This document shows, in pieces, positions 4,119-53,761 of a DNA stretch of 64,000 nt. Every line of letters begins with the position of its first letter. Position 1 is the stretch's first letter. The DNA lies in IMG/VR virus record IMGVR_UViG_3300047558_000137, positions 1-64,000 of that record; one strand, 5' to 3'. The notes under the pieces were generated by a model. It did no database searches. It was not told where the DNA came from and saw only the letters and a program-made list of their open reading frames with translations. A program made the translations under genes and the position numbers.

Positions 4119-5135
4119 TTAGAGGTTTCTATAGATATCTAATAATAGGTTCTTATTGAACTTGTCGCTTTCAATGCTACTTAACTGCCCAGCAACAATT
4201 TGATCTACGCTTTCAAATGCAATATTGCCTTGTATTTCATAGTCGGTTAAGTCAGTTACTTTAGCAGGGATAAGTGTAATTTCACGTAGTTTGTATGTAT
4301 CAATAAATGTTTCTTTAATAAACGTTGCTTCTTCGTAGCTGATATCAATGTCAATGTTTACACGGCAATGCATGCCTGGCTGCAACATAGATTCTGTATG
4401 TGTAACAACATCACTTAGATTAAACACACGGTACTTGGGTTGATCGGGCCATGCATGATATTCAGGTTCCTTGCCCCACTCTAAGATACAGAGTCCGCGA
4501 TCATCGTCGCCGGCATCGGCATAATTGTGTGGGAAGCAATTACCAATGTAAGTTACATTACGTTTTGTTTGTCGCTTGTGAAAATGTCCAGTGAACACAT
4601 GCTCAAAGCCTTGCAGTGCATCTACACTCATCTCGCCATGCTCGGGCATAGCAACCATTGCATTCATTAGGTATCCGGGCAGCTCAAAGTGCCCAAACAT
4701 GTATTTGCCTTTTAGTTTAGCCAGGCGTTTATGGTCGTCGCCCACAAGCCAAGGAGCAATAACCACATTACCCTGATCAAACCAGTCGTTACAGATCTGT
4801 ACGTTGGGGAGATGTTTGGCCCATTCAACACTCTGGATATCTCTTTTATCGCGATAATAGAGATCGTGGTTACCAGGAATAAAGTAGACCCTATCAAAAT
4901 TTCCATTTAAATGCTCCAGAGCCTTAAGGCTATAGTTAAGTGTAACAATATTAATGTTAGCACGATTGTTGTGCCAGTCGCCGAGAAACAGTGCTGTTTC
5001 GCAGCCTTCTTCTCGTGCTTTGGCTGTTGCCCACTTAACAAAGTTTAGGCAATCGTCGTTGTGCAGTGTGCTGTTAGATTTTAGGCCGAAATGTATATCA
5101 GTAAAGATAGCCGCTTTGCGGAATAGGTTAGTCAT
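4119..5135 (-). CDS. gp47: Recombination endonuclease nuclease subunit (T4 gp47 / SbcD / Mre11-like)
   Basis: Phosphoesterase motifs DIH, GD, GNHD, GHF, GHFH. Confidence 0.95.
   Translation of the reverse strand: MTNLFRKAAIFTDIHFGLKSNSTLHNDDCLNFVKWATAKAREEGCETALFLGDWHNNRANINIVTLNYSLKALEHLNGNFDRVYFIPGNHDLYYRDKRDIQSVEWAKHLPNVQICNDWFDQGNVVIAPWLVGDDHKRLAKLKGKYMFGHFELPGYLMNAMVAMPEHGEMSVDALQGFEHVFTGHFHKRQTKRNVTYIGNCFPHNYADAGDDDRGLCILEWGKEPEYHAWPDQPKYRVFNLSDVVTHTESMLQPGMHCRVNIDIDISYEEATFIKETFIDTYKLREITLIPAKVTDLTDYEIQGNIAFESVDQIVAGQLSSIESDKFNKNLLLDIYRNL
4712..4906 (-). CDS. Putative nested +1-frame 64-aa two-TM protein inside gp47
   Basis: GGAG 7 nt before ATG, preceded directly by TAA; two hydrophobic segments. 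Confidence 0.5.
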   Translation of the reverse strand: MEILIGSTLFLVTTISIIAIKEISRVLNGPNISPTYRSVTTGLIRVMWLLLLGLWATTINAWLN

Positions 5136-5190
5136 TGTTATAGTTTACACGAGTTAGTATTCGTTGAGCAAGAGCCTGGCCGCTCAAAGG

Positions 5191-6108
5191 TCATGCAAGG
5201 TGATCAAAGTTTCGTATAACATGGCAGTTCATATTTTGTAAATGAACTAAACAACGGTTAGCTAACTGATCAAATTTTCTAGTAAAGTTAGCGTCAAATA
5301 GTTCTCTAGCCTCGTTGTAGTTTTTAACTAGACGTTTTTTGTCGTATGCAATGGCTTGGTGTGTAGTTAAATGTTGGTGTTTGATTAAGTCCGAAAATTC
5401 AATTATATAAACATTTAGGGTCGGGAAGTGAGTCCTAAAATGGCACATACTATTCCAGGTTGATTTAATTATTTCCACCATTCTTTCCATATCGCTAGCA
5501 GTAATCTCAAACGGAGGTAAACTCTCCCAATCAACATCATCAAAATAGTGATAGTAATCAAATTGGAGACAGATTTGATTACTAACAAACCAATCCCACC
5601 AATTTTTTCTGTATACAAAATAGATATCAGGCATGCTACGAGTTATTAGATCGTAAAAAATTTTATCATCATCGTGTAACCAATAATGATCACATGGAAT
5701 ATCTCTGGGATTCCACCTGCGGTCCTTAAGATAATCAAAGTGACGGTACAATATTGATTCTAAAAATACTGTGCCGCTCCGGGCTACGTGTATAACTTGC
5801 GCTTTAGGCGAACGTGGTTGCGAACCAAATTCAAGATTACGTATTAACAAATGATCTGCATCGCACCACTTGGGACTAACAAAATCTGTGTCTAGCTGGT
5901 AAAGACTTTTGTAAGTTTCTCCAGATACAGAGGTTAAATCTGTAACAGAGTCGGGTGGTATTTCCCACACAGCATCAAAGTTCTGAATAAACGGATTTTT
6001 GGGCCACTTGCCCCCAAACTCTGATTCAAACATGTGATGCCCGGGAAACTGAGATTGGATCCACTCTCTTTCGCCCGGAACATCCTGTGTAAAAATAATT
6101 TTATTCAT
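5191..6108 (-). CDS. Sulfotransferase/P-loop-like hypothetical protein
   Basis: HVARSGTVFLESIL resembles the 5'-PSB loop; YRKNWWDWFVS resembles the 3'-PB motif. ATG at 6108 overlaps the stop of the sigma gene. Confidence 0.5.
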   Translation of the reverse strand: MNKIIFTQDVPGEREWIQSQFPGHHMFESEFGGKWPKNPFIQNFDAVWEIPPDSVTDLTSVSGETYKSLYQLDTDFVSPKWCDADHLLIRNLEFGSQPRSPKAQVIHVARSGTVFLESILYRHFDYLKDRRWNPRDIPCDHYWLHDDDKIFYDLITRSMPDIYFVYRKNWWDWFVSNQICLQFDYYHYFDDVDWESLPPFEITASDMERMVEIIKSTWNSMCHFRTHFPTLNVYIIEFSDLIKHQHLTTHQAIAYDKKRLVKNYNEARELFDANFTRKFDQLANRCLVHLQNMNCHVIRNFDHLA

Positions 6109-6976
6109 CGGAATCGTAGTGTCCGCCACCAAAGCCCATGCCTTGTCTAGTGTACGACGGATTAAGGTTGTTCATTTCAAGTATGTCATCACGAAGGTTT
6201 TGGTTACGTTTTTCAATGTTAAGAACTCGTGTAAAACTATTAGTGATCGCGGCAGTATAATAGGCAAATGGGTTCTGTGACTTTGATTCATCAAACTGCA
6301 AACCAATCTGTGATAACTGCAATAAAGCCTGACTACGCATTTCATCATTGTAAGTATACCCTCGCCAGTTCGATCTTGTTGCATAACGCTCGCACAGCTT
6401 CATAAACATGTGTGCTAGTTTGTTAGTCATTTTACCATGTTCGCGGCTAAAATGCCCTGTATCCAATTCTCCGACCCAGTGACTCTTGCCAACTAATACT
6501 GGTTCACCTGCTTCATTTACACGATAATGTTGGAATGGTGGGAAGTTGCATTTAACGTATTTGGTATTGTTAGAAATATCAATTTCGCTATCGTCATCAT
6601 ACTCGCTAGTGGGCAGGCCTTCTTCTTCCATAGCTTTCAATGCAGCCTTTCGACTTTTAGCATCGTCGACAGGAATATGGTCCCAAGTCATAACTCGAAA
6701 TACTACATCAGTGTCGGGTACGTCTTTAAGTTTGATTTCGAACTCATCTAGTTTACGCTTTGTGCCATCTGCTGTTGCAGCTTCATGCGCTAACTTTGCT
6801 AGGCGTTCTGCACGATTTTGTCGAGCTTCTTTGATGTTCTTTTTGTTTATTTTGCTAACATCAGGAAGAATGATATCATAATCAGCATCTTCTGGGTTAG
6901 AATATTTGCAATAAGTGTTTTTGCTTTTGTGAATTTCTTTAAGAATGTCTTTGTTGTTAAGATAGTTGTAACGCAC
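6101..6976 (-). CDS. gp55: Late-transcription sigma factor (T4 gp55-like)
   Basis: NYLNNKDILKEI N-terminus; NWRGYTYNDEM...FDESKSQNPFAYYTAAITNSF...EKRNQ matches the gp55 pattern. GTG start with AAGGA Shine-Dalgarno. Confidence 0.85.
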   Translation of the reverse strand: MRYNYLNNKDILKEIHKSKNTYCKYSNPEDADYDIILPDVSKINKKNIKEARQNRAERLAKLAHEAATADGTKRKLDEFEIKLKDVPDTDVVFRVMTWDHIPVDDAKSRKAALKAMEEEGLPTSEYDDDSEIDISNNTKYVKCNFPPFQHYRVNEAGEPVLVGKSHWVGELDTGHFSREHGKMTNKLAHMFMKLCERYATRSNWRGYTYNDEMRSQALLQLSQIGLQFDESKSQNPFAYYTAAITNSFTRVLNIEKRNQNLRDDILEMNNLNPSYTRQGMGFGGGHYDSDE

Positions 6977-7079: not shown

Positions 7080-7099
7080 CAGTATAAATTAGGATCTTT

Positions 7100-10502: not shown

Positions 10503-11888
10503 ATGGGAAGTTCAGATAGTATAAGACGCTCTGGTGCAAATCCGGATGCAAGAGCAGACTCAAAAATTTCGGGTTATATCTCTGATGCTGGTCCCTACGA
10601 AGCTGTGGTTGTGGGAGTTGTTGAAGGCAGTCGCATGGGACAGTTATTAGTAGATATCATTGATTGGCAAGGCGCAATTACTGAACTAGGTTCCGGTGAT
10701 GTACATGCTATCCCTGTGTCCTATGCAAGTCCTTTTTACGGAACAACGTATGGTGCAGATTCACAACAATTGCCTGATGCACCTATTGCGTCAGCACAAA
10801 GTTATGGTATGTGGTTCGTTCCTCCGGACATTGGTAACAAAGTATTAGTTACATTTGTTGCTGGCGATATGAGCAGGGGATATTGGTTTGCCTGTATATA
10901 CGATACACCCAGTCACCATATGGTTCCAGCCATTGGTCGTAACGTTGGTGGTAAGGATAAAGTTCGGAATCCAGGTGACCAATTAAGTCGATATTTAACG
11001 AGTGATAGTATAGTTCCTGTTGCGGAGGCTAGAACGTCAGACCCAGAGCTATGGGGCAACGATGGTCTGGAAAAAGTTTCAAGATACCCCCACGAGGTAC
11101 AAACTTCAAAATTTGTTATGCAAGGACTTGATCGTGATCCTCTACGTGGTGCAATTAGTTCTAGTAGTCTTAGAGAAAGTCCCAGCAATGTTTACGGAAT
11201 CAGTACACCGGGTCGTAAGTTAGGAAATTCAATTGGTCAAATTGCCCAGGTACGAGCCGGGGGACATCAATTTGTAATGGATGACGGTGATAAAGATGGC
11301 AAAGATCAATTAATGCGCTTACGTACAAGTGGTGGGCATCAAATTTTGATGAACGATTCGGAAAACATAATGTACATAGCCAGTTCTACAGGTCAACAAT
11401 GGTTAGAATTTAGTGCAGACGGCAGTATTAACATCTTTGGCGCTGCGGGCATTAATATGAGATCAATGGGGCCAATTAACATGCATAGTGATAGTGCTAT
11501 TAACATGGATGCTATGGCAATTAAAATTAACGGATCGTTGTCTGTTGGTATTACTAGTTTAGGCACATTCAGTGCTAGTGCCATTGGCAGCGCAACAGTA
11601 AAAGCTAATGGCTCTTTATCACTAAGTGGAATGGGCATGGCCAGTTTAAGCGCCGGCGGAAGTTTAACAATGTCAGCAATGGGCGTATGTAGTGTGGCAG
11701 GATCAGCGTTGAAACTAAATTCACCTCCTGGTGGTAAGCCGCCTATGCCGGCGCTACCTTCATTGGGCAAGCCACACAAAGAGTCAAACTTCAATGGAAG
11801 TTATTGGCAAAAGGATGCAAAAATAACAACTTCGATTTGTACAGTAGTTCCAGCACATGAACCATGGGAAAGACCTGAGAAGAAATGA
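10503..11888 (+). CDS. Baseplate central spike (gp5/VgrG-like)
   Basis: OB-fold GMWFVPPDIGNKVLVTF, RTSGGHQILMND, beta-helix repeats, C-terminal CTVVPAHEPW. Confidence 0.75.
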   Translation: MGSSDSIRRSGANPDARADSKISGYISDAGPYEAVVVGVVEGSRMGQLLVDIIDWQGAITELGSGDVHAIPVSYASPFYGTTYGADSQQLPDAPIASAQSYGMWFVPPDIGNKVLVTFVAGDMSRGYWFACIYDTPSHHMVPAIGRNVGGKDKVRNPGDQLSRYLTSDSIVPVAEARTSDPELWGNDGLEKVSRYPHEVQTSKFVMQGLDRDPLRGAISSSSLRESPSNVYGISTPGRKLGNSIGQIAQVRAGGHQFVMDDGDKDGKDQLMRLRTSGGHQILMNDSENIMYIASSTGQQWLEFSADGSINIFGAAGINMRSMGPINMHSDSAINMDAMAIKINGSLSVGITSLGTFSASAIGSATVKANGSLSLSGMGMASLSAGGSLTMSAMGVCSVAGSALKLNSPPGGKPPMPALPSLGKPHKESNFNGSYWQKDAKITTSICTVVPAHEPWERPEKK

Positions 11889-40032: not shown

Positions 40033-40583
40033 ATACAGTAATTTGTTATTATCCTGGGTCGGGCGGACATAGATATAAAAACTTTTTAACTGACCAAGAA
40101 TATACAACCCCATCTAAAATTTACGATAATAATCAAAAAGATATTTACAATATTAGATATATAACCAACGACACTAAAGTAGTCAATTGTGACAAGACAA
40201 TATTGTTAACACATTGCATGAATAGTTCATTGATTAATGAAAAAATACCAAATAGTCGTATTATTAAAATAGTTGCAAATTTACAACTTAGTTTAGCCCG
40301 CGGGTGGGGCAATTTTTTTAAAGATCTAAAACAATTTGATAGCGATTTGGATAACGCATTTACTACAATTAAATGGCATCTTGAATATTACAATCAATAT
40401 CCAGCTGACATAACAGCAGATGAATTGGTACTAGTGGATATAGATTCAACAACATTTTGCCAAACAATGCGTAGTGAATTAACCAATTACAGCAATCAAA
40501 CATTTAATCGAGCATGGGAAATTTATTCTAAATTTGGCCCGCAAGCACCAGTACTGGATATAGAGCGTAATGAACAAAAGTGA
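40029..40583 (+). CDS. Hypothetical protein (weak sulfotransferase/P-loop-like start)
   Basis: YYPGSGG near the N-terminus; very AT-rich. Confidence 0.55.
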   Translation: MNTVICYYPGSGGHRYKNFLTDQEYTTPSKIYDNNQKDIYNIRYITNDTKVVNCDKTILLTHCMNSSLINEKIPNSRIIKIVANLQLSLARGWGNFFKDLKQFDSDLDNAFTTIKWHLEYYNQYPADITADELVLVDIDSTTFCQTMRSELTNYSNQTFNRAWEIYSKFGPQAPVLDIERNEQK

Positions 40584-41952: not shown

Positions 41953-43318
41953 TAACGAAACCGATTCACAATATAAACGCAGAGTCATTGACATCAAGTC
42001 AAATAGTTTCTGCGGCGCCAAATGGTATAACGCCACTATCTGGTTAGGATCGGGGCAAACAACTAGTTGTCATCATCCTTTGCCACATCAAGTTAGTGTA
42101 GAAGATGTAATAGCAAATCCCAAAGCATTGCACAATACACAAAAGAAAAAAATGGAACGTGAGCAGATGCAACGTGGCGAACGCCCAAGTGGATGCGAGT
42201 ACTGTTGGAAAATTGAGGATATGTACAAGGATCCAAAATTTGCTGGCCGCGATGTTGCAGAGCCCATAAGTGATCGCGTATACAAAACAGTTATATATTC
42301 AGATGAGGATTTAAATGCAGCATTTCGTACTCCAGCAAGCGAGGACACAGACCTCCAAACCCTTGAAATTGCGTTCGATCGCACTTGTCAGTTTGCTTGT
42401 TCTTACTGTAACCCAGCTTTTAGTAGTACTTGGGTTAAGGACATTAAACAACATGGACCCTATACCAACTTGGTTAGTGACGGTAGGAACCACTTTACTC
42501 ACACTCACGATAGTAGCCAATTGTATAAGTTCGGTGATCGTAATCCGTACGTGGATGCGTTCCATGCGTGGTGGGAAAGCGACCTCCACAGAACACTAAA
42601 GGAACTACGCATTACTGGCGGCGAACCTTTGATGTCAGGTGAGACATGGAAGTTGATTGACTGGTTTAAAACTAACAAAGGCAAGAGTACGACACGCCTT
42701 GCTATTAACAGTAATCTTGGTACAGACGTTGATATCGATCGTCTATTAGATAGCATTGATGGTGTAGAAGTGGATCTATACACTAGTAATGAAGCTGTTG
42801 GTTTACAGGCTGAATATATTCGTGACGGGTTGGTATTTGATGACTGGGCTAACAATGTAGAACGTTTACTAGACTCAGGTAAGTTCCGTGGTTTGCATAC
42901 AATGTGTACTATCAACGCACTATGCTTGAGTAGCCTAGACAGTTTCCTCGAAATGGTATACAATTGGAAATTAGAGTACGGCAAGGATTCAATTAACTTT
43001 TCACTAAATATATTACGATTCCCAAGTTTTCAAAGTCCTCTAGTACTGCCCGACGATATCCGAACAGAATACCAGGCTAGACTAGCAACGTTTCTAGTAG
43101 ACCACAAAGGCGACAGCACATTCCACGAATATGAAATTAATCAATTGATTAGATTGATTGATTATCTTGATGTAGTTAAGACTCCACACGAAGGTGCAGT
43201 GGCACAGAGTATACTTCAACGCGACTTTAAGAACTTCTATCAACAGTATGACCAACGTAGAGGTAAAAACTTTGATAACACATTCCCAGAGTTAGCAGAA
43301 TGGTACAAAACACTGTAA
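41939..43318 (+). CDS. Twitch-domain radical SAM protein
   Basis: CGAKW...SCHH, CEYCW, CQFACSYC, TGGEP. Confidence 0.88.
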   Translation: MPKINNETDSQYKRRVIDIKSNSFCGAKWYNATIWLGSGQTTSCHHPLPHQVSVEDVIANPKALHNTQKKKMEREQMQRGERPSGCEYCWKIEDMYKDPKFAGRDVAEPISDRVYKTVIYSDEDLNAAFRTPASEDTDLQTLEIAFDRTCQFACSYCNPAFSSTWVKDIKQHGPYTNLVSDGRNHFTHTHDSSQLYKFGDRNPYVDAFHAWWESDLHRTLKELRITGGEPLMSGETWKLIDWFKTNKGKSTTRLAINSNLGTDVDIDRLLDSIDGVEVDLYTSNEAVGLQAEYIRDGLVFDDWANNVERLLDSGKFRGLHTMCTINALCLSSLDSFLEMVYNWKLEYGKDSINFSLNILRFPSFQSPLVLPDDIRTEYQARLATFLVDHKGDSTFHEYEINQLIRLIDYLDVVKTPHEGAVAQSILQRDFKNFYQQYDQRRGKNFDNTFPELAEWYKTL

Positions 43319-44079
43319 AATCTCGATTTAAGAATTTAGTTGTATCTGGGTGCAGCTTTACCCACGAACCAATTAATGAATGGAATCCTTTTAGTTGGGC
43401 AAATACGTTTGGCCATTTAACTGATATGGTGGTACATAATCTTGCTATGCCCGGTGCCGGGAACGATCATATTTCAAAAAGTATAATTTTGTATATGGAA
43501 AGAAATTCATTTGATCCTGCTGATACGTTAGTATTAGTCATGTGGTCCGGAGTGGGAAGAATCGACTGGATTGCAGATAGATCTAAATCAAATTTTGGTG
43601 ACGAGTATCCGTTTACATATAACTATGATGATAACAATGAATTAGTTTTAGGTGGTAACTGGTGGAATAAAAAGAATCCAAGTCCATTAATAAAAACATT
43701 AATAAACTATTCTAAATATCAATCCGACAGCACGTTTGCATTGCACACTTGGTTGGCCATGCAAAATTTATCTAATTATCTAAAAGTAAACAATTTCGAA
43801 TATTACTACACATCATTCTTAAATTACAACAACACAAAAATCAAAGGTGATGCACTAACTGTCAACTTCTTTAAAGAGTTAGAAAATTTAAATCTATCAA
43901 TTGATTATAATCATTGGCTAGATTTTCAAGATGAAGAATACTATGGCGATTGGTCAAGAATACACAATTTTTTAGATGATGACGGCTTTCATCCTAGGTA
44001 TCCAAAAGCAACTGAAGGTTGGACTAAAGAAATTTTAATACCAAAATTAATTAAACTGGGAATTTTATATAACGTATGA
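43300..44079 (+). CDS. SGNH/GDSL-like hydrolase or acyltransferase
   Basis: VSGCSFT, NLAMPGAGND, DGFHP. Confidence 0.65.
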   Translation: MVQNTVKSRFKNLVVSGCSFTHEPINEWNPFSWANTFGHLTDMVVHNLAMPGAGNDHISKSIILYMERNSFDPADTLVLVMWSGVGRIDWIADRSKSNFGDEYPFTYNYDDNNELVLGGNWWNKKNPSPLIKTLINYSKYQSDSTFALHTWLAMQNLSNYLKVNNFEYYYTSFLNYNNTKIKGDALTVNFFKELENLNLSIDYNHWLDFQDEEYYGDWSRIHNFLDDDGFHPRYPKATEGWTKEILIPKLIKLGILYNV

Positions 44080-45410
44080 CAGATAAAACAGTAGCAGGAT
44101 TTTACGATAATGGGTACGATTACAATGCTCGTGCTCCTTATTTCATTGAGCGTGATCAACTAACTGATGACCAATGGAAAAAATTAACAGAAAGCAAAAC
44201 ATTTTGTATGATGCCATGGGTTCATATGCACGCCTTCCCAGATGGTCGTGCGTATCCTTGCTGTTTAGCAGACTACTGGCATCCCGTCGGCGACCTTCGT
44301 AAGAATACTATGAAGGAAATTTGGAACCAGGACAAGTATCGGCAGATCCGAGTAAACATGTTGGAGGATAAAGAGTGTATAGAATGCACTAAGTGTTATG
44401 AAAGAGAACAACACGGTGCGTTTAGTATGCGTAATGATGCCAATCGTAATTATGGGCAGTACATTAAAGAAGTAGAGTCAACGCTCGAAGATGGTACACA
44501 CCCAGAATTTAAGATTAGATACTGGGATGTTCGTTTTAGTAACCTTTGTAATTTTAGTTGCCGTAGTTGCGGTCCTATTTTTAGTAGCAATTGGTATAAT
44601 GATCACGTAAAGTTATACAACCGTAAACCTGATGTACTGGGCAGAGACATGTTGCGTGTAGAATATACCACAGGCGACGAAGATGACATGATTGCTCAAA
44701 TGATGCCGCATCTACCTTACTTGGAACAAGTTTACTTTGCTGGCGGTGAACCATTAATCATGAAGGAACACTACTTCATGTTAGAAAAGTTAATTGAGCT
44801 AGGTAAAACAGATATACGTTTACAGTACAATACAAATTTTAGTGAACTACGTTTCAAAGACAAACATGTGTTTGACTACTGGAAACATTTTAAAAATGTA
44901 AGTGTGGGCGCAAGCCTAGACGCATCGGGCGCCAGAGCAGAACTGATGCGTAAAGGAACTGATTGGCAGCAAACAGTAGACAATCGTAAACGCATGATGC
45001 AAGAAGTACCGCACGTAGACTTCTATATCAGTGCAACAGTAAGTTCAATGAATGTATTACACGTATTAGATTTCCATAAAGAATGGTGCGACTTGGGATT
45101 AATACAACCTAAAGATTTTAATATTAATATATGCCAGGATAGTAAGTGGTATCGTACTGACATATTTCCCTCATGGTTTAAAGAAGAAATTATAACTCCT
45201 GCTTACCAAGAGCACATTAAATGGCTAGAGCCACAAGACTCATTGTCTCGAGCAACCAACGGATTTAAGAGTGTATTGAGCTTTACTAACGCAACAGATA
45301 ACACCAGTGAATGGTCACGTTTTATTGAAGAAACAAGTAAGTTGGACAAAATTAGAAATGAAAACTTTTGGGATGTATTTCCTGAAATTAAAAAGGCCTT
45401 ATCAAAATGA
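44076..45410 (+). CDS. Twitch-domain radical SAM protein
   Basis: CMMPWVH...PCC, CNFSCRSC, AGGEP, YNTN. Confidence 0.9.
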   Translation: MTDKTVAGFYDNGYDYNARAPYFIERDQLTDDQWKKLTESKTFCMMPWVHMHAFPDGRAYPCCLADYWHPVGDLRKNTMKEIWNQDKYRQIRVNMLEDKECIECTKCYEREQHGAFSMRNDANRNYGQYIKEVESTLEDGTHPEFKIRYWDVRFSNLCNFSCRSCGPIFSSNWYNDHVKLYNRKPDVLGRDMLRVEYTTGDEDDMIAQMMPHLPYLEQVYFAGGEPLIMKEHYFMLEKLIELGKTDIRLQYNTNFSELRFKDKHVFDYWKHFKNVSVGASLDASGARAELMRKGTDWQQTVDNRKRMMQEVPHVDFYISATVSSMNVLHVLDFHKEWCDLGLIQPKDFNINICQDSKWYRTDIFPSWFKEEIITPAYQEHIKWLEPQDSLSRATNGFKSVLSFTNATDNTSEWSRFIEETSKLDKIRNENFWDVFPEIKKALSK

Positions 45411-46627
45411 CATTGCCATCAACTATTTGCATGTTGCCCTGGATGAGTATTGAAGCTAGCCCAATGGGCACAGCTCGTCCCTGCTGTTTGGCTAGAGAGG
45501 AAATCACAGATGAAAATGGAAGTAAGTTTAGTCTCAAGGATACGCCCCTCGAAACCATTTATAAAAGTGAATATATGCAGACTCTTAGACGACAGTTTCG
45601 TGCTGGCGATAAACCAGAAACCTGTCGTCTTTGTTGGGAAGAAGAAGCCGCAGGCCGCGATAGCAAGAGGATTCATAGCCGAGTTCGTCTCAAAGAATTA
45701 TATCAGCAGGTCGATTGGTATAATGACTGTCCTGACCAACTCTGGTTTATTGACCTTAAACTTGGTAACATTTGCAACTTAAAGTGCCGTATATGTGGCA
45801 GTTGGTCTAGCAGTAAGTGGGCCGCAGAAGAAATGGATTACTTACCTAAAGGTGCTAATAAGAAAGAACACATTGCTTATCAATGGTTAAAGCAGGGCAA
45901 GTGGCCCGAAGAAAGCCCCGACTTCTGGGAAAATCTAAAATCACTGTTGCCCAACATCAAGTACTTTGAGTTCACTGGTGGAGAGCCCTGGCTCATTGAA
46001 GAACACTGGGACTTGTTAAAGTATGCAGTAGAAACTGGCGACAGCAAGCATATTGATATTCACTACAATACTAATGCTACTGTGGACCCAATGGGTAAAG
46101 ATAAGTCTTGGGTGTGGGGCGAGTTTGGCCGTGTTGACATTGCATTTAGTATCGACAACGTAGAAGAAAGATTTGAGTACGAACGTTACGGCGCAAATTG
46201 GATTGAAGCAAACAACATCATCAACGACATTCACATGTCTAGATATATTGATAATCCAAACATCACTACTCAGCTTTGCTTTACCATCAACATTCAAAAC
46301 GTTTACTACTTAGATGAGCTGTTGGCCTGGGCAGAAACAAAAGAATTTGGCAGCATCTATTTTAATATGTTACATAGTCCCGATCATATGAGCATACAGC
46401 GCATGACACCAGCGGCCAAGGATTTAGTACTAAACAAACTAAAAACAACATTTTGGTCTACAGACAAGTATCAACAAGAAATAGATAATGTTATACAGTT
46501 TATCGAAAATGGTCCAGGTAGTGATGGTACTGAATTCTTAGAAAAAATGCAGCGCACAGATGCGTATCGTAAACAAAACTTTATGGATACACATCCTGAA
46601 ATAGCTCGCGCAATGGGATACCAATGA
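45407..46627 (+). CDS. Twitch-domain radical SAM protein
   Basis: CMLPW...PCC, CNLKCRIC, TGGEP, YNTN. Confidence 0.9.
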   Translation: MTLPSTICMLPWMSIEASPMGTARPCCLAREEITDENGSKFSLKDTPLETIYKSEYMQTLRRQFRAGDKPETCRLCWEEEAAGRDSKRIHSRVRLKELYQQVDWYNDCPDQLWFIDLKLGNICNLKCRICGSWSSSKWAAEEMDYLPKGANKKEHIAYQWLKQGKWPEESPDFWENLKSLLPNIKYFEFTGGEPWLIEEHWDLLKYAVETGDSKHIDIHYNTNATVDPMGKDKSWVWGEFGRVDIAFSIDNVEERFEYERYGANWIEANNIINDIHMSRYIDNPNITTQLCFTINIQNVYYLDELLAWAETKEFGSIYFNMLHSPDHMSIQRMTPAAKDLVLNKLKTTFWSTDKYQQEIDNVIQFIENGPGSDGTEFLEKMQRTDAYRKQNFMDTHPEIARAMGYQ

Positions 46628-47307
46628 CATCGGCTATAATTGGTTACACTGGATTTATTGGCAAGTATCTGTGTCGTAATACAAAGTTTGATTATTTCTT
46701 TAATTCTGAGAATATCGATGAAATAACAAAAAACAGTTATGACGTAGTCTATTGTGCCGCACCTCATGGTAATAGAATTTTATCAAGTGCTGACCCTGCG
46801 GCCGATTGTGCCAATGTGGAAAAATTAATATCCAGTTTAACTAAACTAGACACCAATAGATTTATATTAATTGGTACTGTTGATGCATTGGTATCTAATA
46901 GAGATTACGGAAAGAATAGAAAACTATTAGAAGATTTTGTTAAACAGAATTTTCATTCATATAACATTGTAAGATTAAGTTCATTGATATTTGATACTAT
47001 ACAAAAAAATCTATTGTATGATTTAAAACATCAACAATGGTTAGAATCAATTAATCCGGAGTCAACACTACAGTGGTATCCGTTAGAAAAAATAATTGAT
47101 GATATTGCCTGGGCAGTTGATAACCGCGTCAACGAACTAAATCTAGTATCTGAACCTGTTAACAATTTAGAAATTATTCAGCAATTTGCACCCAACTGTC
47201 TTGCCAGTATCTCAGAGAAGAAGGATGCAACGCATTACAATATCACACCATATCGTTTTAGTAAAAAAGAAATATTTTCTTACATTGAAAGATATATGCA
47301 GCAATGA
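46624..47307 (+). CDS. NAD-dependent epimerase/dehydratase-like protein
   Basis: IIGYTGFIG Rossmann motif, YGKNR, IVRL. Confidence 0.7.
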   Translation: MTSAIIGYTGFIGKYLCRNTKFDYFFNSENIDEITKNSYDVVYCAAPHGNRILSSADPAADCANVEKLISSLTKLDTNRFILIGTVDALVSNRDYGKNRKLLEDFVKQNFHSYNIVRLSSLIFDTIQKNLLYDLKHQQWLESINPESTLQWYPLEKIIDDIAWAVDNRVNELNLVSEPVNNLEIIQQFAPNCLASISEKKDATHYNITPYRFSKKEIFSYIERYMQQ

Positions 47308-48203
47308 TAGACCTGGTACTACGTCCCAATGAATTTACTAGTTTTACTTCTTTTTATCTAGAGCAGTTCTGGAGAAAGTTTTTTAACATATCATACTATG
47401 ATCCAACTAAAACATATGATAAGAATAGAACACTATTTGCAGTATGGTGGCAAACCGTAGATTCGGATCCCTGGCCAGCTCATATGAGAGATTTGGGCTA
47501 TAAGGTTGTGGTTGATAATATATGGGAAAGGCAACAGTTTCGTACAGATTACCATTGGATAGAACACAAATATTCAATGTGTTGGAATGAAAGTCTGTGG
47601 TGGGAAAGTCTAGGCTATGCTGATTATGTTCCACAAAGAAATTTAGAGTATCTTGCATTTATGCAGATGCGCTTGGCAAAGCCCGAGAGAGATAAGATAC
47701 ACAAAGAGCTTGATCCATTCTTAGATAGAATGTTATGGAGTTACTTAGCAAAGAATCAAACACTTGATGACGACACAGACGATAAGCTGTCGGGCCAACG
47801 ATATATGCATCCAAATTGGTACAACAAAACCTATTGCAGTATAGTAGTAGAAACCTATGTAAATGGCGGGCTACATGCGTCGGAGAAGACATATAAACCT
47901 ATAGCATACTATCACCCTTTTATGACTATAAGTGTTCCTGGTACACTGGCATTTTTAAAAGAGGCTGGGTTTGAAACATTTGATAATTTATTTGATGAAA
48001 GCTACGATAACATACATAATTTAGATTTACGATTAGATATTATAAAATCAAATTTGGAATCTATTAGATTAGATAAATCATATGATAAACTAACATTAGA
48101 TAAAATAGAATATAATCATAATAAATTTTTTAATAAACAAGAAACCTTAACATCAATGGAACAAGAAATAGTTAATCCATTATTAGAATATGCAGAAGCC
48201 TGA
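47304..48203 (+). CDS. Hypothetical protein, possibly GT-B-like glycan-related
   Basis: SIVVET...SEKTYKPI...GFETFDNLFDESYD C-terminal pattern. Confidence 0.55.
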   Translation: MIDLVLRPNEFTSFTSFYLEQFWRKFFNISYYDPTKTYDKNRTLFAVWWQTVDSDPWPAHMRDLGYKVVVDNIWERQQFRTDYHWIEHKYSMCWNESLWWESLGYADYVPQRNLEYLAFMQMRLAKPERDKIHKELDPFLDRMLWSYLAKNQTLDDDTDDKLSGQRYMHPNWYNKTYCSIVVETYVNGGLHASEKTYKPIAYYHPFMTISVPGTLAFLKEAGFETFDNLFDESYDNIHNLDLRLDIIKSNLESIRLDKSYDKLTLDKIEYNHNKFFNKQETLTSMEQEIVNPLLEYAEA

Positions 48204-49497
48204 TACACTATGCATGGCGCCGTGGACGCACACATACCTAAGCCCACAAACAGAACGTAGGATGTGTTGTGCCAGCCGAGAACCTGCACAAAACTTTCAG
48301 CAGTATATCGACACTAGCGCCGGCACCGGGCGATATATACCTATCACTTTGGATGAACACTGGAATGGAGAGCACATGAGGTCCGTGCGCCTACGTATGA
48401 TGCGTGGGGAAATCCTCCCAGAGTGCGAAGTATGTAATGATCGACTGTTGAATACTTCCGTTTACCGCAGTTATTTTAATCAACTGTTTGGTCATAAGTA
48501 CAATGAAGCAATGGCAAATACAGCCGAAGATGGTACGACTACATTGCAGCCAGTTAGTTGGGATTACCGTTTTAGTAATCTCTGTAACTTCAAATGTCGC
48601 ATGTGTGGGGACATGTTAAGCAGTGCTTGGGAGTCCGAGCAACGCCAACACAACATGATCAATTGGCACGATCCAAAGAACAATTGGATGAAGCCTGAGA
48701 TCAAAAAACAAATTGAAAGTTTTCAAGAAGGTCAAATAGAAGCCGAGTTCTCAAAGGCAGTTGAAGAACACAGAGTTGAAGAAGTATACTGGGTAGGTGG
48801 CGAGCCACTAATGTATGAACAACACTGGCGTTACATGGCTCGCATAGTTGAACTAGGAGATGGACCAAATGTTTACGCTCGTTATAACACCAACTTATCT
48901 CGCGTTAATTACAAGGGTATCAATTTGTATAGTGATATTCTTAGCCGGGTTCGTGACTGGCAAATATGCGCTTCAATTGATGGCACTGGGAAAATCGGGG
49001 AGTATATCAGAACCGGACTCGATTATGATCAATGGCTTAGAAACTTCCGTGCAGGAGTTGAGATCGCAACTCACAGACGTCAGATGCGAATTGACTTTAC
49101 ACTCACACTGCCAGGAATGTTCGAAGTTGAACGAATACAACAGCTCGCAGACAAGTTAAATGTAGACGTACTTGCTAAAGTAATTTTTAGTTTTAGCCCG
49201 GACATAGTTATGTCACCTTTAGCACTACCCAGAGAACTTCTAGATCCCTGGATAGACGAAACACTAAGAGAATTCGATTCAATTGGCACGAGCCCGTTAA
49301 AGGATATCCTTGTCCAGCTAAAAACTAGACCTACATTTGAAGAACAATGGCCCGACGAATACCGTACGGCTATTGCAAAAGGCAAAGCTCGTGTGTTAAA
49401 ATTAGAGCAAATACGTACACAGTCAATTACTATGACCGATATATTAAGTCAACGTCCGGACGTATTAGAATGGTGGATGAGCATTGAAACAATTTAA
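48190..49497 (+). CDS. Twitch-domain radical SAM protein
   Basis: CMAPWTH...MCC, CNFKCRMC, VGGEP, YNTN, ASIDG. Confidence 0.9.
   Translation: MQKPDTLCMAPWTHTYLSPQTERRMCCASREPAQNFQQYIDTSAGTGRYIPITLDEHWNGEHMRSVRLRMMRGEILPECEVCNDRLLNTSVYRSYFNQLFGHKYNEAMANTAEDGTTTLQPVSWDYRFSNLCNFKCRMCGDMLSSAWESEQRQHNMINWHDPKNNWMKPEIKKQIESFQEGQIEAEFSKAVEEHRVEEVYWVGGEPLMYEQHWRYMARIVELGDGPNVYARYNTNLSRVNYKGINLYSDILSRVRDWQICASIDGTGKIGEYIRTGLDYDQWLRNFRAGVEIATHRRQMRIDFTLTLPGMFEVERIQQLADKLNVDVLAKVIFSFSPDIVMSPLALPRELLDPWIDETLREFDSIGTSPLKDILVQLKTRPTFEEQWPDEYRTAIAKGKARVLKLEQIRTQSITMTDILSQRPDVLEWWMSIETI
48869..49159 (+). CDS. Putative nested +1-frame protein with N-terminal TM and coiled coil
   Basis: AGGAG 9 nt before ATG 48869; +1 stops are dense on both flanks and absent inside. 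Confidence 0.5.
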   Translation: MFTLVITPTYLALITRVSICIVIFLAGFVTGKYALQLMALGKSGSISEPDSIMINGLETSVQELRSQLTDVRCELTLHSHCQECSKLNEYNSSQTS

Positions 49498-49705
49498 AAT
49501 CAAAAACAGCATGATACCAGAAGTTACCCGATGGTGTCTGGAGAATTTAGGTAAAGAAAATATTCGTTGGTGGGTGTCACCTATTGGTACAGGTAACTGG
49601 AATGGTACCACATCAAAGTTTGAAAATGATATACAGTTGTTTATTGATGTTACTGAAGAAGAAGAAACCAACTTAACATATTTTGTTTTACGATATGATC
49701 AATAA
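49484..49705 (+). CDS. Hypothetical protein
   Basis: 73-aa ORF coupled to neighbours. Confidence 0.6.
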   Translation: MKQFKIKNSMIPEVTRWCLENLGKENIRWWVSPIGTGNWNGTTSKFENDIQLFIDVTEEEETNLTYFVLRYDQ

Positions 49706-50771
49706 AGTTATTGTTACACTACGTAACCCGCTGGCAAAAAATGAAACGTTAGACTACATAATTGAAGTAAACGATAGTCCAATGGGTTCTCGTTGGTACA
49801 TGGCCCTATATGATCTATTAAAGCAAAACCGGTATCTTGAAAAGAACTTTTGCTTTTTAGGTTTTCCTGACAGTGCCCGCGACCTAGAATATATTTGTCA
49901 AGAACTAGAATGGGCCGTTAAGCAGATTAATAGTTTCTTTGATCCCAGTGACTACTACATAGGACAGGCCTTTACGCCAGACAATCTGCGAGAAGGACTC
50001 GATCCTAATCAAGCGATGTTCAACGTATTGCACAATCACTTTGAGCACTTACAAGGTACAGTTTGGGGTCTAAGTGAATGGTACAAACGTGCCGACTATG
50101 AAACTAAGTTTGCCATTAGACAACTAAACAATCTATGTCACGAAGCAGAAAGCCTACTACTAAGTCAACGCAAACAGGTAGAAGCACCAGACTGGGTTAG
50201 ACCCAGTCAAATAACTACATTCTTAAATGCACAGCGATTGGAATTCCCCGATGAACTTAAAACGACTTTTGAAGAAACGAGATATGATCGTAAATTCGGT
50301 CAGGTATACTTACATTGGACCCAAATTGGGAAGACGCTATACGAGGTATTTAGAGATGAAGGGGGCGTGGCGGTGGATCAAGCCACTTGCGATGCTATTA
50401 CTCACTTACGATACTATTCGGGTGAATTTGATATTGAGTGGGCGCAGGACGTTGTCTATGGTGGACCGCATCCTTGGCACACCCGAGAAATTGATTTATT
50501 CAGATCTTGGCTTGAACAAAACAGATTCAACTTGGTGGACAGAAATTACAATTTTGGATATCACGCCGTCGGCCAAGTTAATCTTGCAGAGTCTTTTGGA
50601 ACAACCAACCACCGTGAAGTTTGGCCCATACTCTCTAGACACCTCGATATCTATAGCATACAAGCCGGCAGTGCCAAGTCAGTATACGACTATAACTGGA
50701 CAGACGTAGATTACTACCAACAACAAATAGAAAGATTGAAACCCGGATATGATTATAGTAGCAGGCGGTGA
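49695..50771 (+). CDS. Hypothetical protein
   Basis: About 358 aa; ATG 49695 preferred over TTG 49683. Confidence 0.75.
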   Translation: MINKVIVTLRNPLAKNETLDYIIEVNDSPMGSRWYMALYDLLKQNRYLEKNFCFLGFPDSARDLEYICQELEWAVKQINSFFDPSDYYIGQAFTPDNLREGLDPNQAMFNVLHNHFEHLQGTVWGLSEWYKRADYETKFAIRQLNNLCHEAESLLLSQRKQVEAPDWVRPSQITTFLNAQRLEFPDELKTTFEETRYDRKFGQVYLHWTQIGKTLYEVFRDEGGVAVDQATCDAITHLRYYSGEFDIEWAQDVVYGGPHPWHTREIDLFRSWLEQNRFNLVDRNYNFGYHAVGQVNLAESFGTTNHREVWPILSRHLDIYSIQAGSAKSVYDYNWTDVDYYQQQIERLKPGYDYSSRR

Positions 50772-51646: not shown

Positions 51647-52305
51647 TTAAACACATACTAACTGTCGGCGACAGTTTTACCTACGGGGAAGAACTTGAAA
51701 ACAGAGACAATGCATATCCCTATTATCTTGCTAAAGGGTTAAAAGCTGAAGTAGTTAATCTTGGACAGCCTAGTGGTGGTAATCGTCAAATGGTACGCAA
51801 AGTAATAGATTATGTTCTAAGTGGTGAACCGTTAGATCTAGTAATCATTGGGTGGACAAGTCCCGGGCGTATAGAGTTTGCAGATGCCAATGGTGTGTTT
51901 GATATATGGCCCGGCTACGGGGGAGACCTGTTTAGACGTGACGGGCAAGAGTGGCGACTAGAATTACTAGACTACATTAACAAGCATCACGATCCAGAAT
52001 ATCTATATAGACAACATCTTAACGATATTATTCTGTTACAGAGTTTTTTACAACAGCGTAACATACGTTATCTAATGTTAAAGGTAGTTGGTAATGAGTA
52101 TTATCACAATACCTACTACAATGAAGATGCAGTATTGCCTAAACAAATTGATGCAACACACTTTGTGGGATGGCCCAATCAAGGGATGGCAGAATGGACA
52201 AACGGATGTCGACGTGGACCACGTGGGCATTTTCTCGAAGAAGGTCACAGAAAGGTGACAGCAAAACTTTATGAACATATTAGGAATCTCGGCTGGCTTT
52301 CATGA
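51643..52305 (+). CDS. SGNH/GDSL-like hydrolase or acyltransferase
   Basis: VGDSFTYG, NLGQPSGGN, GHF. Confidence 0.7.
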   Translation: MIKHILTVGDSFTYGEELENRDNAYPYYLAKGLKAEVVNLGQPSGGNRQMVRKVIDYVLSGEPLDLVIIGWTSPGRIEFADANGVFDIWPGYGGDLFRRDGQEWRLELLDYINKHHDPEYLYRQHLNDIILLQSFLQQRNIRYLMLKVVGNEYYHNTYYNEDAVLPKQIDATHFVGWPNQGMAEWTNGCRRGPRGHFLEEGHRKVTAKLYEHIRNLGWLS

Positions 52306-53761
52306 TGCAGCCGCAACAGTATTAGACGATGATGGGAACATCTTATTTGCCTCACACAGCGAGCGTTACAGTAAGCAGAAGTCTGATGCTAATTTTTGCA
52401 GCCCTCTTATTCGTGAGCTTGAGCAGTACAATCCAATTGGAACCGCAGCCTACTATGAGCGCCCATTGGTTAAACAGCTACGACAGCTTTATGCAGGACA
52501 GGGATTTGAATGGAACAAACTATCTACAAAGAAGTTGGTACATGATCAAATTGGTTATGCCAAGTGGTGGGACCTTAGCAAGTACAGAAGTTTCAACCAC
52601 CATCTTAGTCATGCAGCCGCTGGATTCCAGACTAGCAGTTTTGATAGGGCAACGGTCGTTGTAATCGATGCAATAGGTGAATTTGAAACAGTAACCATAT
52701 GGGGTGCAGAATATGATAGCACAGGTCGAGCAGTTTATAAAAAGTTGTGGCAACGCAATTACCCGCATAGCATTGGACTCTTTTACACTGGAGCTACTAA
52801 GCGGGTTGGCCTTAAGCCACTAGACGAAGAATACATTCTAATGGGCATGGCCGCCTATGGCAACCGCGGATTCAGCGATTTACTAAAGATGGACTTAATT
52901 GACAATGAATGGGAAATTAAATTCAAACAGAATATGCACACAGGGCTAACATTAAAGTATCTAAATGATGCAACAGCAGATTTTGATGTAGCAGCCGCGG
53001 CCCAAGATCTAGTAGAAGATTTAATACTTAACGTTATGCTTAGAGCCAAACAGTTTAAGTGGAGTGACAATTTAGTTTACATGGGCGGGTGCGCCCTTAA
53101 TTGTAGTGCCAATGCACGTATAGGAGCTTACTTTGATAATATATGGATTATGCCTAATCCTGGTGACGCTGGTAGCAGCCTTGGTGCTGCCGCTTTGGCT
53201 TATGGGCGTAGAATTAACTGGACCAGTGCTTATCTCGGGCATAATATTCCTGGCAATTATCCCGTTATGGAGCTTTTGGATAGGCTACTTGCTGAACAGA
53301 TTGTGGGAGTGGCAAGTGGACGTGCCGAATTCGGCCCCCGCGCACTCGGAAACCGTAGCCTCCTTGCGGACCCTCGAGGCAGCGAGATTAAGGAGAGAGT
53401 AAATGACATTAAACGTAGGCAACAGTTCAGACCCTTTGCGCCAGTTATTTTGGAAGAGTTGGCTGACACTTACTTTGATATGCCTCGCGGTTGGGGTAAC
53501 AGTAGGTATATGCAAACAGTCGCTCGTTGTAGGTTTCCTGACCTATTTCCTGCTATCGTTCATCATGACGGCACTAGTCGTGTACAAACTGTGCCGCGTG
53601 ATGGATCGGGAATACGAGAGCTGTTAGAACGATGGTTTGTAATGACTGACTGCCCTATGCTGCTCAATACAAGCCTGAACATACGTGGCGAACCAATGGT
53701 TAATGATCGTGCAGATGCAGATCGATTTGAAAAATTATATGGTATAAAGGTCTGCTCATGA
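52271..53761 (+). CDS. Carbamoyltransferase (NodU/CmcH family)
   Basis: GFHDAAA, HSERY, HHLSHAAAG, GDAGSSLGAA, GRAEFGPRALGNRSLLADP, RPFAP, LLNTSLN. Confidence 0.93.
   Translation: MNILGISAGFHDAAATVLDDDGNILFASHSERYSKQKSDANFCSPLIRELEQYNPIGTAAYYERPLVKQLRQLYAGQGFEWNKLSTKKLVHDQIGYAKWWDLSKYRSFNHHLSHAAAGFQTSSFDRATVVVIDAIGEFETVTIWGAEYDSTGRAVYKKLWQRNYPHSIGLFYTGATKRVGLKPLDEEYILMGMAAYGNRGFSDLLKMDLIDNEWEIKFKQNMHTGLTLKYLNDATADFDVAAAAQDLVEDLILNVMLRAKQFKWSDNLVYMGGCALNCSANARIGAYFDNIWIMPNPGDAGSSLGAAALAYGRRINWTSAYLGHNIPGNYPVMELLDRLLAEQIVGVASGRAEFGPRALGNRSLLADPRGSEIKERVNDIKRRQQFRPFAPVILEELADTYFDMPRGWGNSRYMQTVARCRFPDLFPAIVHHDGTSRVQTVPRDGSGIRELLERWFVMTDCPMLLNTSLNIRGEPMVNDRADADRFEKLYGIKVCS
53133..53402 (+). CDS. 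Putative nested +1-frame 89-aa two-TM protein in the carbamoyltransferase gene
   Basis: AGGAG 6 nt before TTG; two hydrophobic helices. Confidence 0.55.
   Translation: MIIYGLCLILVTLVAALVLPLWLMGVELTGPVLISGIIFLAIIPLWSFWIGYLLNRLWEWQVDVPNSAPAHSETVASLRTLEAARLRRE
53403..53627 (+). CDS. Putative nested +1-frame 74-aa two-TM protein in the carbamoyltransferase gene
   Basis: TAAGGAG 7 nt before ATG; TAA-ATG junction with the preceding nested ORF. Confidence 0.6.
   Translation: MTLNVGNSSDPLRQLFWKSWLTLTLICLAVGVTVGICKQSLVVGFLTYFLLSFIMTALVVYKLCRVMDREYESC

Follow-up and report, generated by a model that had tools for sequence, protein, structure and literature searches.

Here we report that, inside several conserved enzyme genes of an uncultured 374-kb phage (IMG/VR record IMGVR_UViG_3300047558_000137), a second reading frame has been kept open across dozens of diverged relatives, in the best-supported cases with its own ribosome-binding site and start codon. 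At least five, and probably eight, small and mostly membrane-type proteins appear to be encoded within other genes of the analysed window, which consists of 64,000 nucleotides (positions 1 to 64,000 of the record), while the remaining nested ORFs are best read as what codon composition gives by chance. Five ORFs are strongly conserved (4712, 42315, 48860, 53133 and 53403, named here by their lowest coordinate) and three are conserved only in closer relatives or in one clade (39188, 40901 and 50227). Translation of these ORFs is inferred from sequence comparison alone, any function of their products is conjectural, and constraint on the nested amino-acid sequences is weak.

Nested ORFs in the window

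The window contains 18 same-strand nested ORFs of 60-160 codons, all in the +1 frame and none in the +2 frame. These include all 13 that a preliminary description, made from the sequence alone, had attributed to gp47, gp55, the spike gene, the 39139 gene, four radical SAM genes, the 49683 gene and the carbamoyltransferase gene. The TAAATG junctions reported there at 4906, 42315, 50227 and 53403 are present, as are the Shine-Dalgarno cores GGAG, GAGGA, AGGAG and AAGGAG; the observation itself is confirmed. Within-gene synonymous shuffling gave 8.8±2.7 ORFs of at least 60 aa against the 18 observed (P=0.002), 2.0 against 12 at 80 aa or more and 0.5 against 5 at 100 aa or more, so about half of the list is expected by chance. 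Taken by host gene, the shuffle P was at most 0.001 for the 48190, 49683 and 52271 hosts, 0.03-0.05 for 40570 and 41939, and 0.27 for gp47 taken alone.

Two elements of the preliminary description carry no weight. That the ORFs are always in +1 is the default, since the +2 frame has 1.7 times more stops and the null gives only 0.5 such ORFs there. That the remaining NTA codons are followed by C/T is true of any open +1 frame by definition, and becomes evidence only in orthologues, where it does hold. The reported codon shift is real: NTA makes up 18% of Leu/Ile/Val codons in the patches against 41% overall, and CGG, CGA, TCG and GGG make up 17% of Arg/Ser/Gly codons against 9.7%.

Table 1. Nested +1 ORFs supported by comparison with orthologues, their associated start signals, and +1 stops summed over orthologues.
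Coordinates	Strand	Host gene	Predicted product	Start signals	+1 stops, observed / expected	Conservation
4712-4906	-	gp47/SbcD-like nuclease, 4119-5135	64 aa, 2 TM helices	ATG at 4904-4906; GGAG at 4914-4917 (-), 7 bases from the ATG; TAAATG junction	41 / 190 (core 4749-4868: 6 / 133)	strong
39188-39433	+	39139-40032	81 aa, basic, weak TM character		15 / 38	closer relatives only
40901-41194	+	radical SAM, 40570-41952	97 aa, 1-2 TM		37 / 66 (40915-41031: 5 / 30)	closer relatives
42315-42599	+	radical SAM, 41939-43318	94 aa, 2 TM	GAGGA at 42305-42309; TAAATG junction	17 / 67	strong
48860-49159	+	radical SAM, 48190-49497	99 aa, N-terminal TM followed by helical segments	likely start the second ATG, at 48869; AGGAG at 48855-48859	10 / 140	strong
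50227-50709	+	49683-50771	160 aa, polar and basic, no TM excess	TAAATG junction	(50433-50651: 36 / 89)	one clade
53133-53402	+	carbamoyltransferase, 52271-53761	89 aa from TTG, about 2 TM	AGGAG at 53122-53126; ends in the TAA of the TAAATG junction	53 / 121 (53147-53344: 25 / 99)	strong
53403-53627	+	carbamoyltransferase, 52271-53761	74 aa, two-helix hairpin, directly after the previous ORF	AAGGAG at 53390-53395; TAAATG at 53400-53405	9 / 52	strong

Conservation of the open frames in orthologues

We compared the nested ORFs with 20-70 diverged orthologues per host gene, counting +1 stops against a null that conditions on each dipeptide of the host protein. The comparison covered 14 of the 18 ORFs; it left out 17575, 30094 and 30874, as no relatives were found for the 8402, 29628 and giant-gene hosts, and 56941, which lies outside the finding and has a shuffle P of 0.45. 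The null fits the flanks of every gene, yet the patches are depleted 2- to 14-fold, and the strong set carries 7-44% of the expected stops. An unbiased scan of 19 genes and 5 alternative frames, leaving out the window's own sequence, returned these intervals as its top hits, and nothing comparable appeared in +2 or in two of the antisense frames. The codon-aligned antisense frame is also depleted in the patches, but an antisense reading was rejected, as this is a by-product of losing TTA and CTA codons: stops remain there at about 1.6 per sequence, and the depletion of NTG before A cannot be explained by it. The orthologues are near synonymous saturation, with codon identity of about 0.5 both inside and outside the patches, although they are metagenomic contigs and not fully independent. 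Six ORFs (6172, 11020, 36205, 39446, 45450 and 52329) show no conservation, and they match the number that the shuffle null predicts by chance.

For 4712, the 73 orthologues (76-88% host identity) carry the ATG at host codon 76 in 68 cases and an ORF of at least 53 aa in 63. The frame is not open in the four isolate relatives PA5oct, fEgEco12, XaC1 and Phosso; the nearest isolates are only 46-48% identical in gp47, and a megablast of 27 kb of the window against annotated phages found nothing. No stops were found in 17 of 23 orthologues for 42315, in 21 of 25 for 48860, in 17 of 23 for 53403 and in the four closest relatives for 53133. Among the less widely conserved ORFs, 6 of 13 orthologues of 39188 have no stops, all among the 7 with the highest host identity, and the start after a stop is conserved in those, whereas 40901 usually ends a few codons earlier in closer relatives. 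For 50227, seven orthologues have no stops where 4-6 are expected and the others have 3-7, as expected; the window and all open or nearly open rows fall in one 14-row clade of the host-gene tree.

The avoidance of stops is frame-specific. At 42315, NTA before A/G is 9% against 39% outside, NTA before C/T is 41% against 50%, and NTG before A is 0 of 65. At 48860, NTA before A/G is 2% against 40%, but NTA is also somewhat reduced before C/T (22% against 45%). In 42315, 53403 and 50227, NTA before C/T is at normal frequency while NTA before A/G is cut 2- to 6-fold. NTG is lost only before A in four of the five strong patches (no data for 4712) and in 40901, but not in 50227.

For the three starts that align across relatives (4906, 48869 and 53403), the start codon and Shine-Dalgarno sequence are held by non-preferred synonymous host codons, with P from 1e-5 to 1e-19. 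The GGAG before 4906 is built from host Leu72 and Glu73, with NTG used in 60 of 73 orthologues and GAG in 53 of 73 (background 0.23, P=7e-19), and Asn76 is AAT in 69 of 73 (P=1.5e-12). At 48869, Gly222 is GGR in 25 of 25 and Asn226 is AAT in 20 of 20. At 53403, Lys373 is AAG in 21 of 23 (background 0.29), Val376 is GTA in 18 of 23 and Asn377 is AAT in 22 of 23. At 42315 the start position varies among relatives and only the GAG of the GAGGA core stands out (Glu122 is GAG in 11 of 15, background 0.23). Relatives of 53133 start with ATG one to ten codons away, behind ATAGGA(G/A) or CCTGGNG. A Shine-Dalgarno core of at least 4 nt lies upstream of 5 of 5 strong ORFs, against 35 of 740 for all +1 internal ATGs, and the mRNA around the starts is less folded than the rest of the gene in 94-100% of orthologues. 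Part of the Shine-Dalgarno and ATG signals, and the low folding, are imposed by host amino acids (Lys, Glu, Asn, Gly).

The predicted products, although +1 frames are hydrophobic by default, exceed a synonymous no-stop null in TM content for six ORFs. At least one TM is predicted in 99% of products against 51% under the null for 4712, in 91% against 60% for 40901, in all against 61% for 42315 and in 96% against 38% for 53403, while for 53133 the mean number of TM helices is 2.04 against 0.43; the excess is marginal for 39188. Position-specific synonymous conservation is raised only for 48860 (0.124 against 0.046-0.096 for control windows of the same gene) and 53403 (0.140 against 0.037-0.057). 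A crude OLGenie-type count, which was too saturated to decide on amino-acid-level selection, showed only slightly lower host-synonymous divergence in the patches and a lower NN/NS ratio only for 48869.

Searches of Pfam and PHROGs gave no recognised family for the nested products; a borderline EMC6 hit (23.7 bits) was taken as TM low complexity. A word-based protein search with the 48860 product found nothing, whereas a profile search found 36 clusters, at least some of them the same ORF called on contig fragments. Gene callers report the same ORFs when the host gene is cut by a contig end, and the profile hits that were looked up lie on contig fragments or frameshifted contigs rather than as stand-alone genes. 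The 48860 ORF was confirmed independently by ORF listing in the sequences L012 and L030. In a further sequence, L134, the carbamoyltransferase is split over three frames, but this looks like indel error and not a natural loss of the host gene. The nested products of the paralogues 40570 and 41939 are not significantly alike (E=5.8). AlphaFold2 added only that the products are helical, with modest confidence: the 53403 model is a hairpin with helices 11-35 and 39-73 (pLDDT 70.5), and the 48860 model has a pLDDT of 61.

Interpretation and alternative explanations

The best explanation, which we hold with good confidence, is that the five strong ORFs are genuine overprinted genes and that 39188, 40901 and 50227 are genuine within sub-clades, having arisen inside older enzyme genes in this lineage of uncultured jumbo phages; the other ten ORFs are best read as chance products, six from the comparison with orthologues. 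In this view, ribosomes would start at an internal Shine-Dalgarno plus ATG (or TTG) on the host gene's mRNA, in a locally unfolded stretch, and read the +1 frame to give products of 60-160 residues, six of the eight being 1-2-helix membrane proteins. The abutting of the two ORFs in the carbamoyltransferase gene suggests that the second is translated by termination-reinitiation coupling. The analysis itself demonstrates that selection keeps these frames open, keeps their start signals and keeps the products hydrophobic, whereas translation and action of the products in the host's inner membrane are inferences, and superinfection exclusion, lysis timing or a role tied to the radical-SAM/carbamoyltransferase cluster are guesses. 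The interpretation given in the preliminary description, of overprinted +1 genes for small membrane proteins whose Shine-Dalgarno and ATG are built from atypical host codons, is thus partly supported: it holds for 5 of the 14 ORFs compared and, within sub-clades, for 3 more, while its proposed exclusion, lysis-control, anti-defence or toxin functions and its genetic entanglement remain conjecture.

Of the alternatives, some of which had been named beforehand as tests, chance origin of all the nested ORFs from the stop-poor, hydrophobic +1 frame of an AT-rich genome with T-ending codons is very unlikely; it is refuted for the five strong ORFs by the depletion of stops against fitting flanks, the selection on start codons and the absence of such intervals in the control frames, but it stands for the six non-conserved ORFs. 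Import of the patches by recombination from a lineage with NTA-poor codon usage would account for the codon shift in the window, but it is refuted, as the same patches are stop-free in relatives that are 12-45% diverged in protein and near saturation at synonymous sites, NTA is near normal where it is harmless in three of the four strongest patches, and host amino-acid identity runs smoothly through the patches.

A non-coding constraint, such as locally pyrimidine-rich third positions, RNA structure or another nucleotide-level signal, could deplete NTA and NTG and leave open hydrophobic frames as a by-product; the reduction of NTA before C/T in patch 48860, the lower third-position A in the patches and the weak constraint on the nested amino-acid sequence are in its favour. 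We consider it unlikely, given the context dependence of NTA and NTG loss, and since a composition effect would not place an ATG, a Shine-Dalgarno and an upstream stop at fixed host codons. It is similarly unlikely, though consistent with conserved start signals and open frames over weakly conserved amino-acid sequence, that the act of translation matters and not the product, for instance by modulating the host gene's translation or mRNA stability: TM content is well above a no-stop null and conserved in position, ORF lengths and ends are largely conserved, and a regulatory ORF would not need 60-100 codons.

Relation to known overprinted genes and significance

Full-text literature searches found no description of nested genes in this phage group. 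In φX174 gene E inside gene D, and in MS2 gene L across the coat and replicase genes, a same-strand +1 ORF with its own start is overprinted on an older gene and gives a small orphan membrane protein restricted to one lineage; overprinting is reviewed in PMC8227390 and PMC3494269. Those are tiny genomes under size constraint with proven lysis proteins, whereas here the genome is 374 kb, there are several such ORFs per 64 kb, the hosts are enzyme genes and any function of the products is conjectural. In λ, and among embedded spanin genes of dsDNA phages, Rz1 lies wholly in the +1 frame inside Rz and both products act at the envelope, but Rz1 is a lipoprotein that works with its host-gene product inside a lysis cassette, while the host genes here are a nuclease, radical SAM enzymes and a carbamoyltransferase, and no lipobox or lysis context was seen. 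Out-of-frame internal initiation in bacterial genes (retapamulin Ribo-seq, bioRxiv 10.1101/520783) and bacterial overlapping genes (PMC4683798, PMC8850804) likewise give a second product, hidden by annotation pipelines, from an internal Shine-Dalgarno and ATG; those cases rest on expression data and often have little conservation, and here the evidence is the reverse, with strong comparative signal and no expression data. De novo membrane proteins from thymine-rich sequence (PMC7005711) concern yeast intergenic ORFs and not frames nested in phage genes, but new ORFs with T-rich middle codon positions yield transmembrane peptides, which offers a reason why +1 overprints become small membrane proteins.

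A class II holin was considered for 53403 and 4712. The two-helix hairpin and a mixed-charge C-terminus are seen for 53403, a topology shared by many unrelated small membrane proteins, but there is no holin family hit in Pfam or PHROGs, the host genes are a carbamoyltransferase and a nuclease, and no endolysin was identified among the neighbours that were scanned. For 48860 an i-spanin was considered, that is, an N-terminal TM helix followed by a helical periplasmic domain and paired with an o-spanin lipoprotein gene; an N-terminal TM and later helices are predicted at low confidence, without a family hit, and no partner lipoprotein was seen in the absence of a search for one.

The kind of gene inferred here is known, and what is unusual is the number of such genes in a jumbo phage. 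The eight supported cases lie in 7 of the 19 host genes that could be compared, and six of those seven are among the ten such genes of one radical-SAM/carbamoyltransferase cluster. It is about as likely as not that this lineage keeps creating and losing small, mostly membrane, proteins by overprinting the +1 frame of conserved genes, although its genome is under no obvious size pressure. That rate would mean dozens of unannotated genes per genome, and would give a natural series of overprints of different ages: clade-specific (50227), family-wide (48860, 53403) and one possibly older than a gene duplication (40901 and 42315).

The comparative test used here, stops expected from each dipeptide against stops observed in orthologues, is cheap and could be run across whole viral collections. 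The set offers dated examples of de novo birth of membrane proteins, and it flags synonymous sites in enzyme genes that are not neutral, which matters for codon-based selection tests and for recoding. Overlapping genes are usually explained by genome compression in small viruses, and annotation pipelines forbid nested genes. Several conserved nested genes in a 374-kb phage would support the 'gene novelty' view of overprinting, and would also show that the coding content of large phages is under-counted.

Nested reading frames and their expectation by chance

By its gp47/SbcD-like nuclease, the 374,314-bp viral contig IMGVR_UViG_3300047558_000137 is a distant relative (46-48% identity) of the jumbo phages PA5oct, the E. 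coli 350-380-kb phages, XaC1 and Phosso, and no close annotated relative was found. With 53 long ORFs taken as host genes, the window (1-64000) contains 18 same-strand nested ORFs of at least 60 codons, all in the +1 frame and none in the +2 frame, which include every ORF listed in the preliminary description. The observation made there is thus confirmed, and the TAAATG junctions and Shine-Dalgarno cores that it described are also present. The host genes are real and comprise a gp47-like metallophosphoesterase, five twitch-domain radical SAM paralogues, a NodU-like carbamoyltransferase and a spike OB-domain protein, whereas the nested products match no family. The window contains no tRNA genes.

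Shuffling of synonymous codons within each gene gave 8.8±2.7 +1 ORFs of at least 60 aa against the 18 observed, 2.0 against 12 at 80 aa or more and 0.5 against 5 at 100 aa or more, and sampling from window-wide codon usage gave the same picture. The +2 frame gave about 0.5 ORFs under the null, with stops 1.7 times denser than in +1, so that the "always +1" pattern stressed in the preliminary description is the default. About half of the list is therefore expected by chance, and the window alone cannot say which half. The positions of the nested ORFs and of the other features discussed here are summarized in the table below.

Nested ORFs and other features, with +1 stops in orthologues and the share of products with at least one predicted TM helix
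Position	Feature	+1 stops observed / expected	Orthologues with no +1 stop	At least one TM, observed	At least one TM, null
48860-49159	nested ORF	10 / 140	21 of 25	96%	53%
53403-53627	nested ORF in the carbamoyltransferase gene	9 / 52	17 of 23	96%	38%
4712-4906	nested ORF in the gp47-like gene	41 / 190 (6 / 133 in its core)	43 of 73	99%	51%
42315-42599	nested ORF in a radical SAM gene	17 / 67	17 of 23	100%	61%
53133-53402	nested ORF in the carbamoyltransferase gene	53 / 121 (25 / 99 in 53147-53344)	6 of 23	83%	37%
40901-41194	nested ORF in a radical SAM gene			91%	60%
50227	nested ORF, 160 codons
39188	nested ORF
11020-11223	nested ORF, not supported	ratio 1.04
39446-39895	nested ORF, not supported	ratio 0.94
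36205-36396	nested ORF, not supported	17 / 19
45450-45782	nested ORF, not supported	ratio 0.84
52329-52664	nested ORF, not supported	ratio 0.84
6172-6384	nested ORF, not supported	ratio 0.74
17575	nested ORF without relatives
30094	nested ORF without relatives
30874	nested ORF without relatives
56941	nested ORF without relatives
40570-49497, 52271-55283	radical SAM/carbamoyltransferase cluster
40029-40583, 43300-44079, 46624-47307, 53758-54486	small genes between the conserved cluster genes
5191-6132	313-codon ORF (TTG start) between the gp47-like and gp55-like genes
16044-27305	single 3753-residue ORF
42505-42984 (-)	antisense ORF
L134:2880-4400	carbamoyltransferase gene of the related locus L134

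Conservation of the open frame in orthologues

Three scans of IMG/VR gave 30 loci around the 49683 gene (55-73% identity), 79 around gp47 (76-88%) and 8 around 35874, and for 19 host genes we built codon alignments of 12-73 de-duplicated orthologues. Synonymous codon identity between orthologues is about 0.5 both inside and outside the patches, so that synonymous sites are near saturation and the sequences are close to independent at those sites. Expected +1 stops were computed for each sequence from the frequency of a +1 stop given each dipeptide, as measured on all long ORFs of the related loci. This null fits the flanks of every gene, with observed about equal to expected, while the patches of the first five ORFs of the table stand out. 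The six unsupported ORFs correspond in number to the chance expectation from shuffling, and four further ORFs fall outside this comparison for lack of relatives.

A scan of all 19 genes in five alternative frames, from which the window's own sequence was left out, returned these same intervals as its top hits, and ordinary end-overlaps between neighbouring genes were picked up as small positive controls. The codon-aligned antisense frame co-varies only because TTA and CTA codons are lost, and +2 and the other two antisense frames gave nothing comparable. Long antisense ORFs are nevertheless common in the window, where the one at 42505-42984 is accompanied by 55 others of at least 60 aa in two of the three antisense frames (34 in one antisense frame and 21 in another), but the scan showed no conserved depletion of stops in the two antisense frames that are independent of the +1 signal. 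A separate listing of ORFs showed the same nested ORFs in two of the related loci, L012 and the most divergent relative, L030.

The depletion is specific to one frame, as shown by the codon counts from orthologues tabulated below, and NTG before other bases is largely unchanged. This is stop avoidance in one frame rather than a general codon-usage shift, which excludes segments imported from a source with NTA-poor codon usage.

Codon context in orthologues for three patches
Patch	NTA before A/G, patch vs outside	NTA before C/T, patch vs outside	NTG before A in the patch
48860	2% vs 40%	22% vs 45%	1 of 89
42315	9% vs 39%	41% vs 50%	0 of 65
53403	6% vs 35%	40% vs 46%	0 of 30

Start signals and predicted products

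In the gp47 ORF the ATG lies at host codon 76 in 68 of 73 orthologues and Asn76 is AAT in 69 of 73 (background 0.58), while the GGAG, with 7 bases between it and the ATG, is made by Leu72 NTG (60 of 73) and Glu73 GAG (53 of 73, background 0.23, P=7e-19). At 48869, Gly222 is GGA or GGG in 25 of 25 and Asn226 is AAT in 20 of 20, and the conserved start is therefore the second ATG, 9 nt after AGGAG. Several relatives, among them loci L008 and L020, have a run of five or six A directly before the homologous ATG (GGAAAAAATG), and such a run is prone to slippage or to sequencing error. At 53403, Lys373 is AAG in 21 of 23 (background 0.29), Val376 is GTA in 18 of 23 and Asn377 is AAT in 22 of 23, which together hold AAGGA-N6-TAAATG in place. 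At 42315 the start position varies among relatives, and only Glu122 GAG of the GAGGA core is enriched (11 of 15, background 0.23). In the window, 5 of 5 strong ORFs have a Shine-Dalgarno core of at least 4 nt, against 35 of 740 for all +1 internal ATGs. The 60 nt around these starts fold more weakly than the rest of the host gene in 94-100% of orthologues, although part of this is imposed by host residues.

To allow for the default hydrophobicity of +1 frames, we used a null that resamples synonymous codons without creating +1 stops, and predicted TM content is still much higher than expected for the six ORFs for which it is tabulated. Alignments show conserved TM positions and partly conserved polar parts. 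AlphaFold2 gave a predicted two-helix hairpin for the 53403 family (pLDDT 70.5) and an all-helical, low-confidence model for the 48869 family. A profile of the 48869 family found 36 clusters among 1.84 billion representatives and a profile of the 53403 family found 8 proteins; those looked up lie at the end of a contig that cuts the host gene or on frameshifted contigs, and none has a meaningful name. In some public assemblies the host gene and the nested frame are fused or split by frameshifts (proteins P0003, P0021 and P0044), and in L134 the carbamoyltransferase is spread over three frames. This is probably indel error, but if it were real, it would be a natural test of whether the nested ORFs outlive their host.

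Constraint on the nested amino-acid sequences is modest. Position-specific synonymous conservation is raised only for 48860 (0.124) and 53403 (0.140), against 0.03-0.07 in most controls, and a crude OLGenie-type count, which is saturated, shows slightly lower host-synonymous divergence in all five patches and a lower NN/NS ratio only for 48869.

Age, genomic setting and interpretation

The gp47 ORF is closed in PA5oct, fEgEco12, XaC1 and Phosso and is therefore specific to the uncultured clade. The 50227 ORF has no stops where 4-6 are expected in seven relatives, which have normal counts outside the patch; together with the window these lie in one 14-member clade of the host-gene tree, whereas all other clades carry 3-7 stops, as expected. 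The 39188 and 40901 ORFs are open mainly in the closer relatives. The 40901 and 42315 ORFs occupy homologous positions in two radical SAM paralogues that are 31% identical, so that either the nested ORF predates the duplication or this host segment is prone to overprinting; their products are not significantly similar.

The cluster contains five tandem paralogues of the "N-terminal twitch-domain radical SAM" subfamily (NF033640), the NodU-like carbamoyltransferase and a kinase/adenylyltransferase-like gene, and is syntenic in about 30 IMG/VR contigs. The small genes between the conserved cluster genes occur only, or almost only, in the window's own or near-identical contigs, and the junctions between cluster genes therefore look like insertion hot spots. 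The 313-codon ORF has no orthologue in 80 related loci, although both of its neighbours are conserved in 70-79 of them, and the first 800 residues of the 3753-residue ORF have relatives only in the window's own contig and one near-identical contig.

Literature searches found reviews of overprinting, bacterial examples and a model for the birth of membrane proteins from T-rich sequence, but no description of this case. The interpretation in the preliminary description, that these ORFs are overprinted genes, is partly supported, its central inference being right for part of the list. What the comparisons show is that selection maintains the open frame, the start signals and the hydrophobic character, whereas translation of the ORFs is inferred from this comparative evidence alone. 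In this view the nested genes would work like φX174 E, MS2 L or λ Rz1, in that internal initiation on the host gene's mRNA would yield a small envelope-type protein, but one with no assigned function, the tests for membership of the holins and spanins having either failed or not established such an identity. The two abutting ORFs in the carbamoyltransferase gene, joined by a selected TAAATG, suggest coupled translation. Six of the ten testable genes of the radical-SAM/carbamoyltransferase cluster carry such an ORF, against one of nine elsewhere, and a link to that pathway is possible, although only as a hypothesis. Overprinted genes of this sort are already known, and those inferred here differ chiefly in their number in a jumbo phage, a lineage which on the present evidence carries overprinted +1 genes that current annotation does not show.
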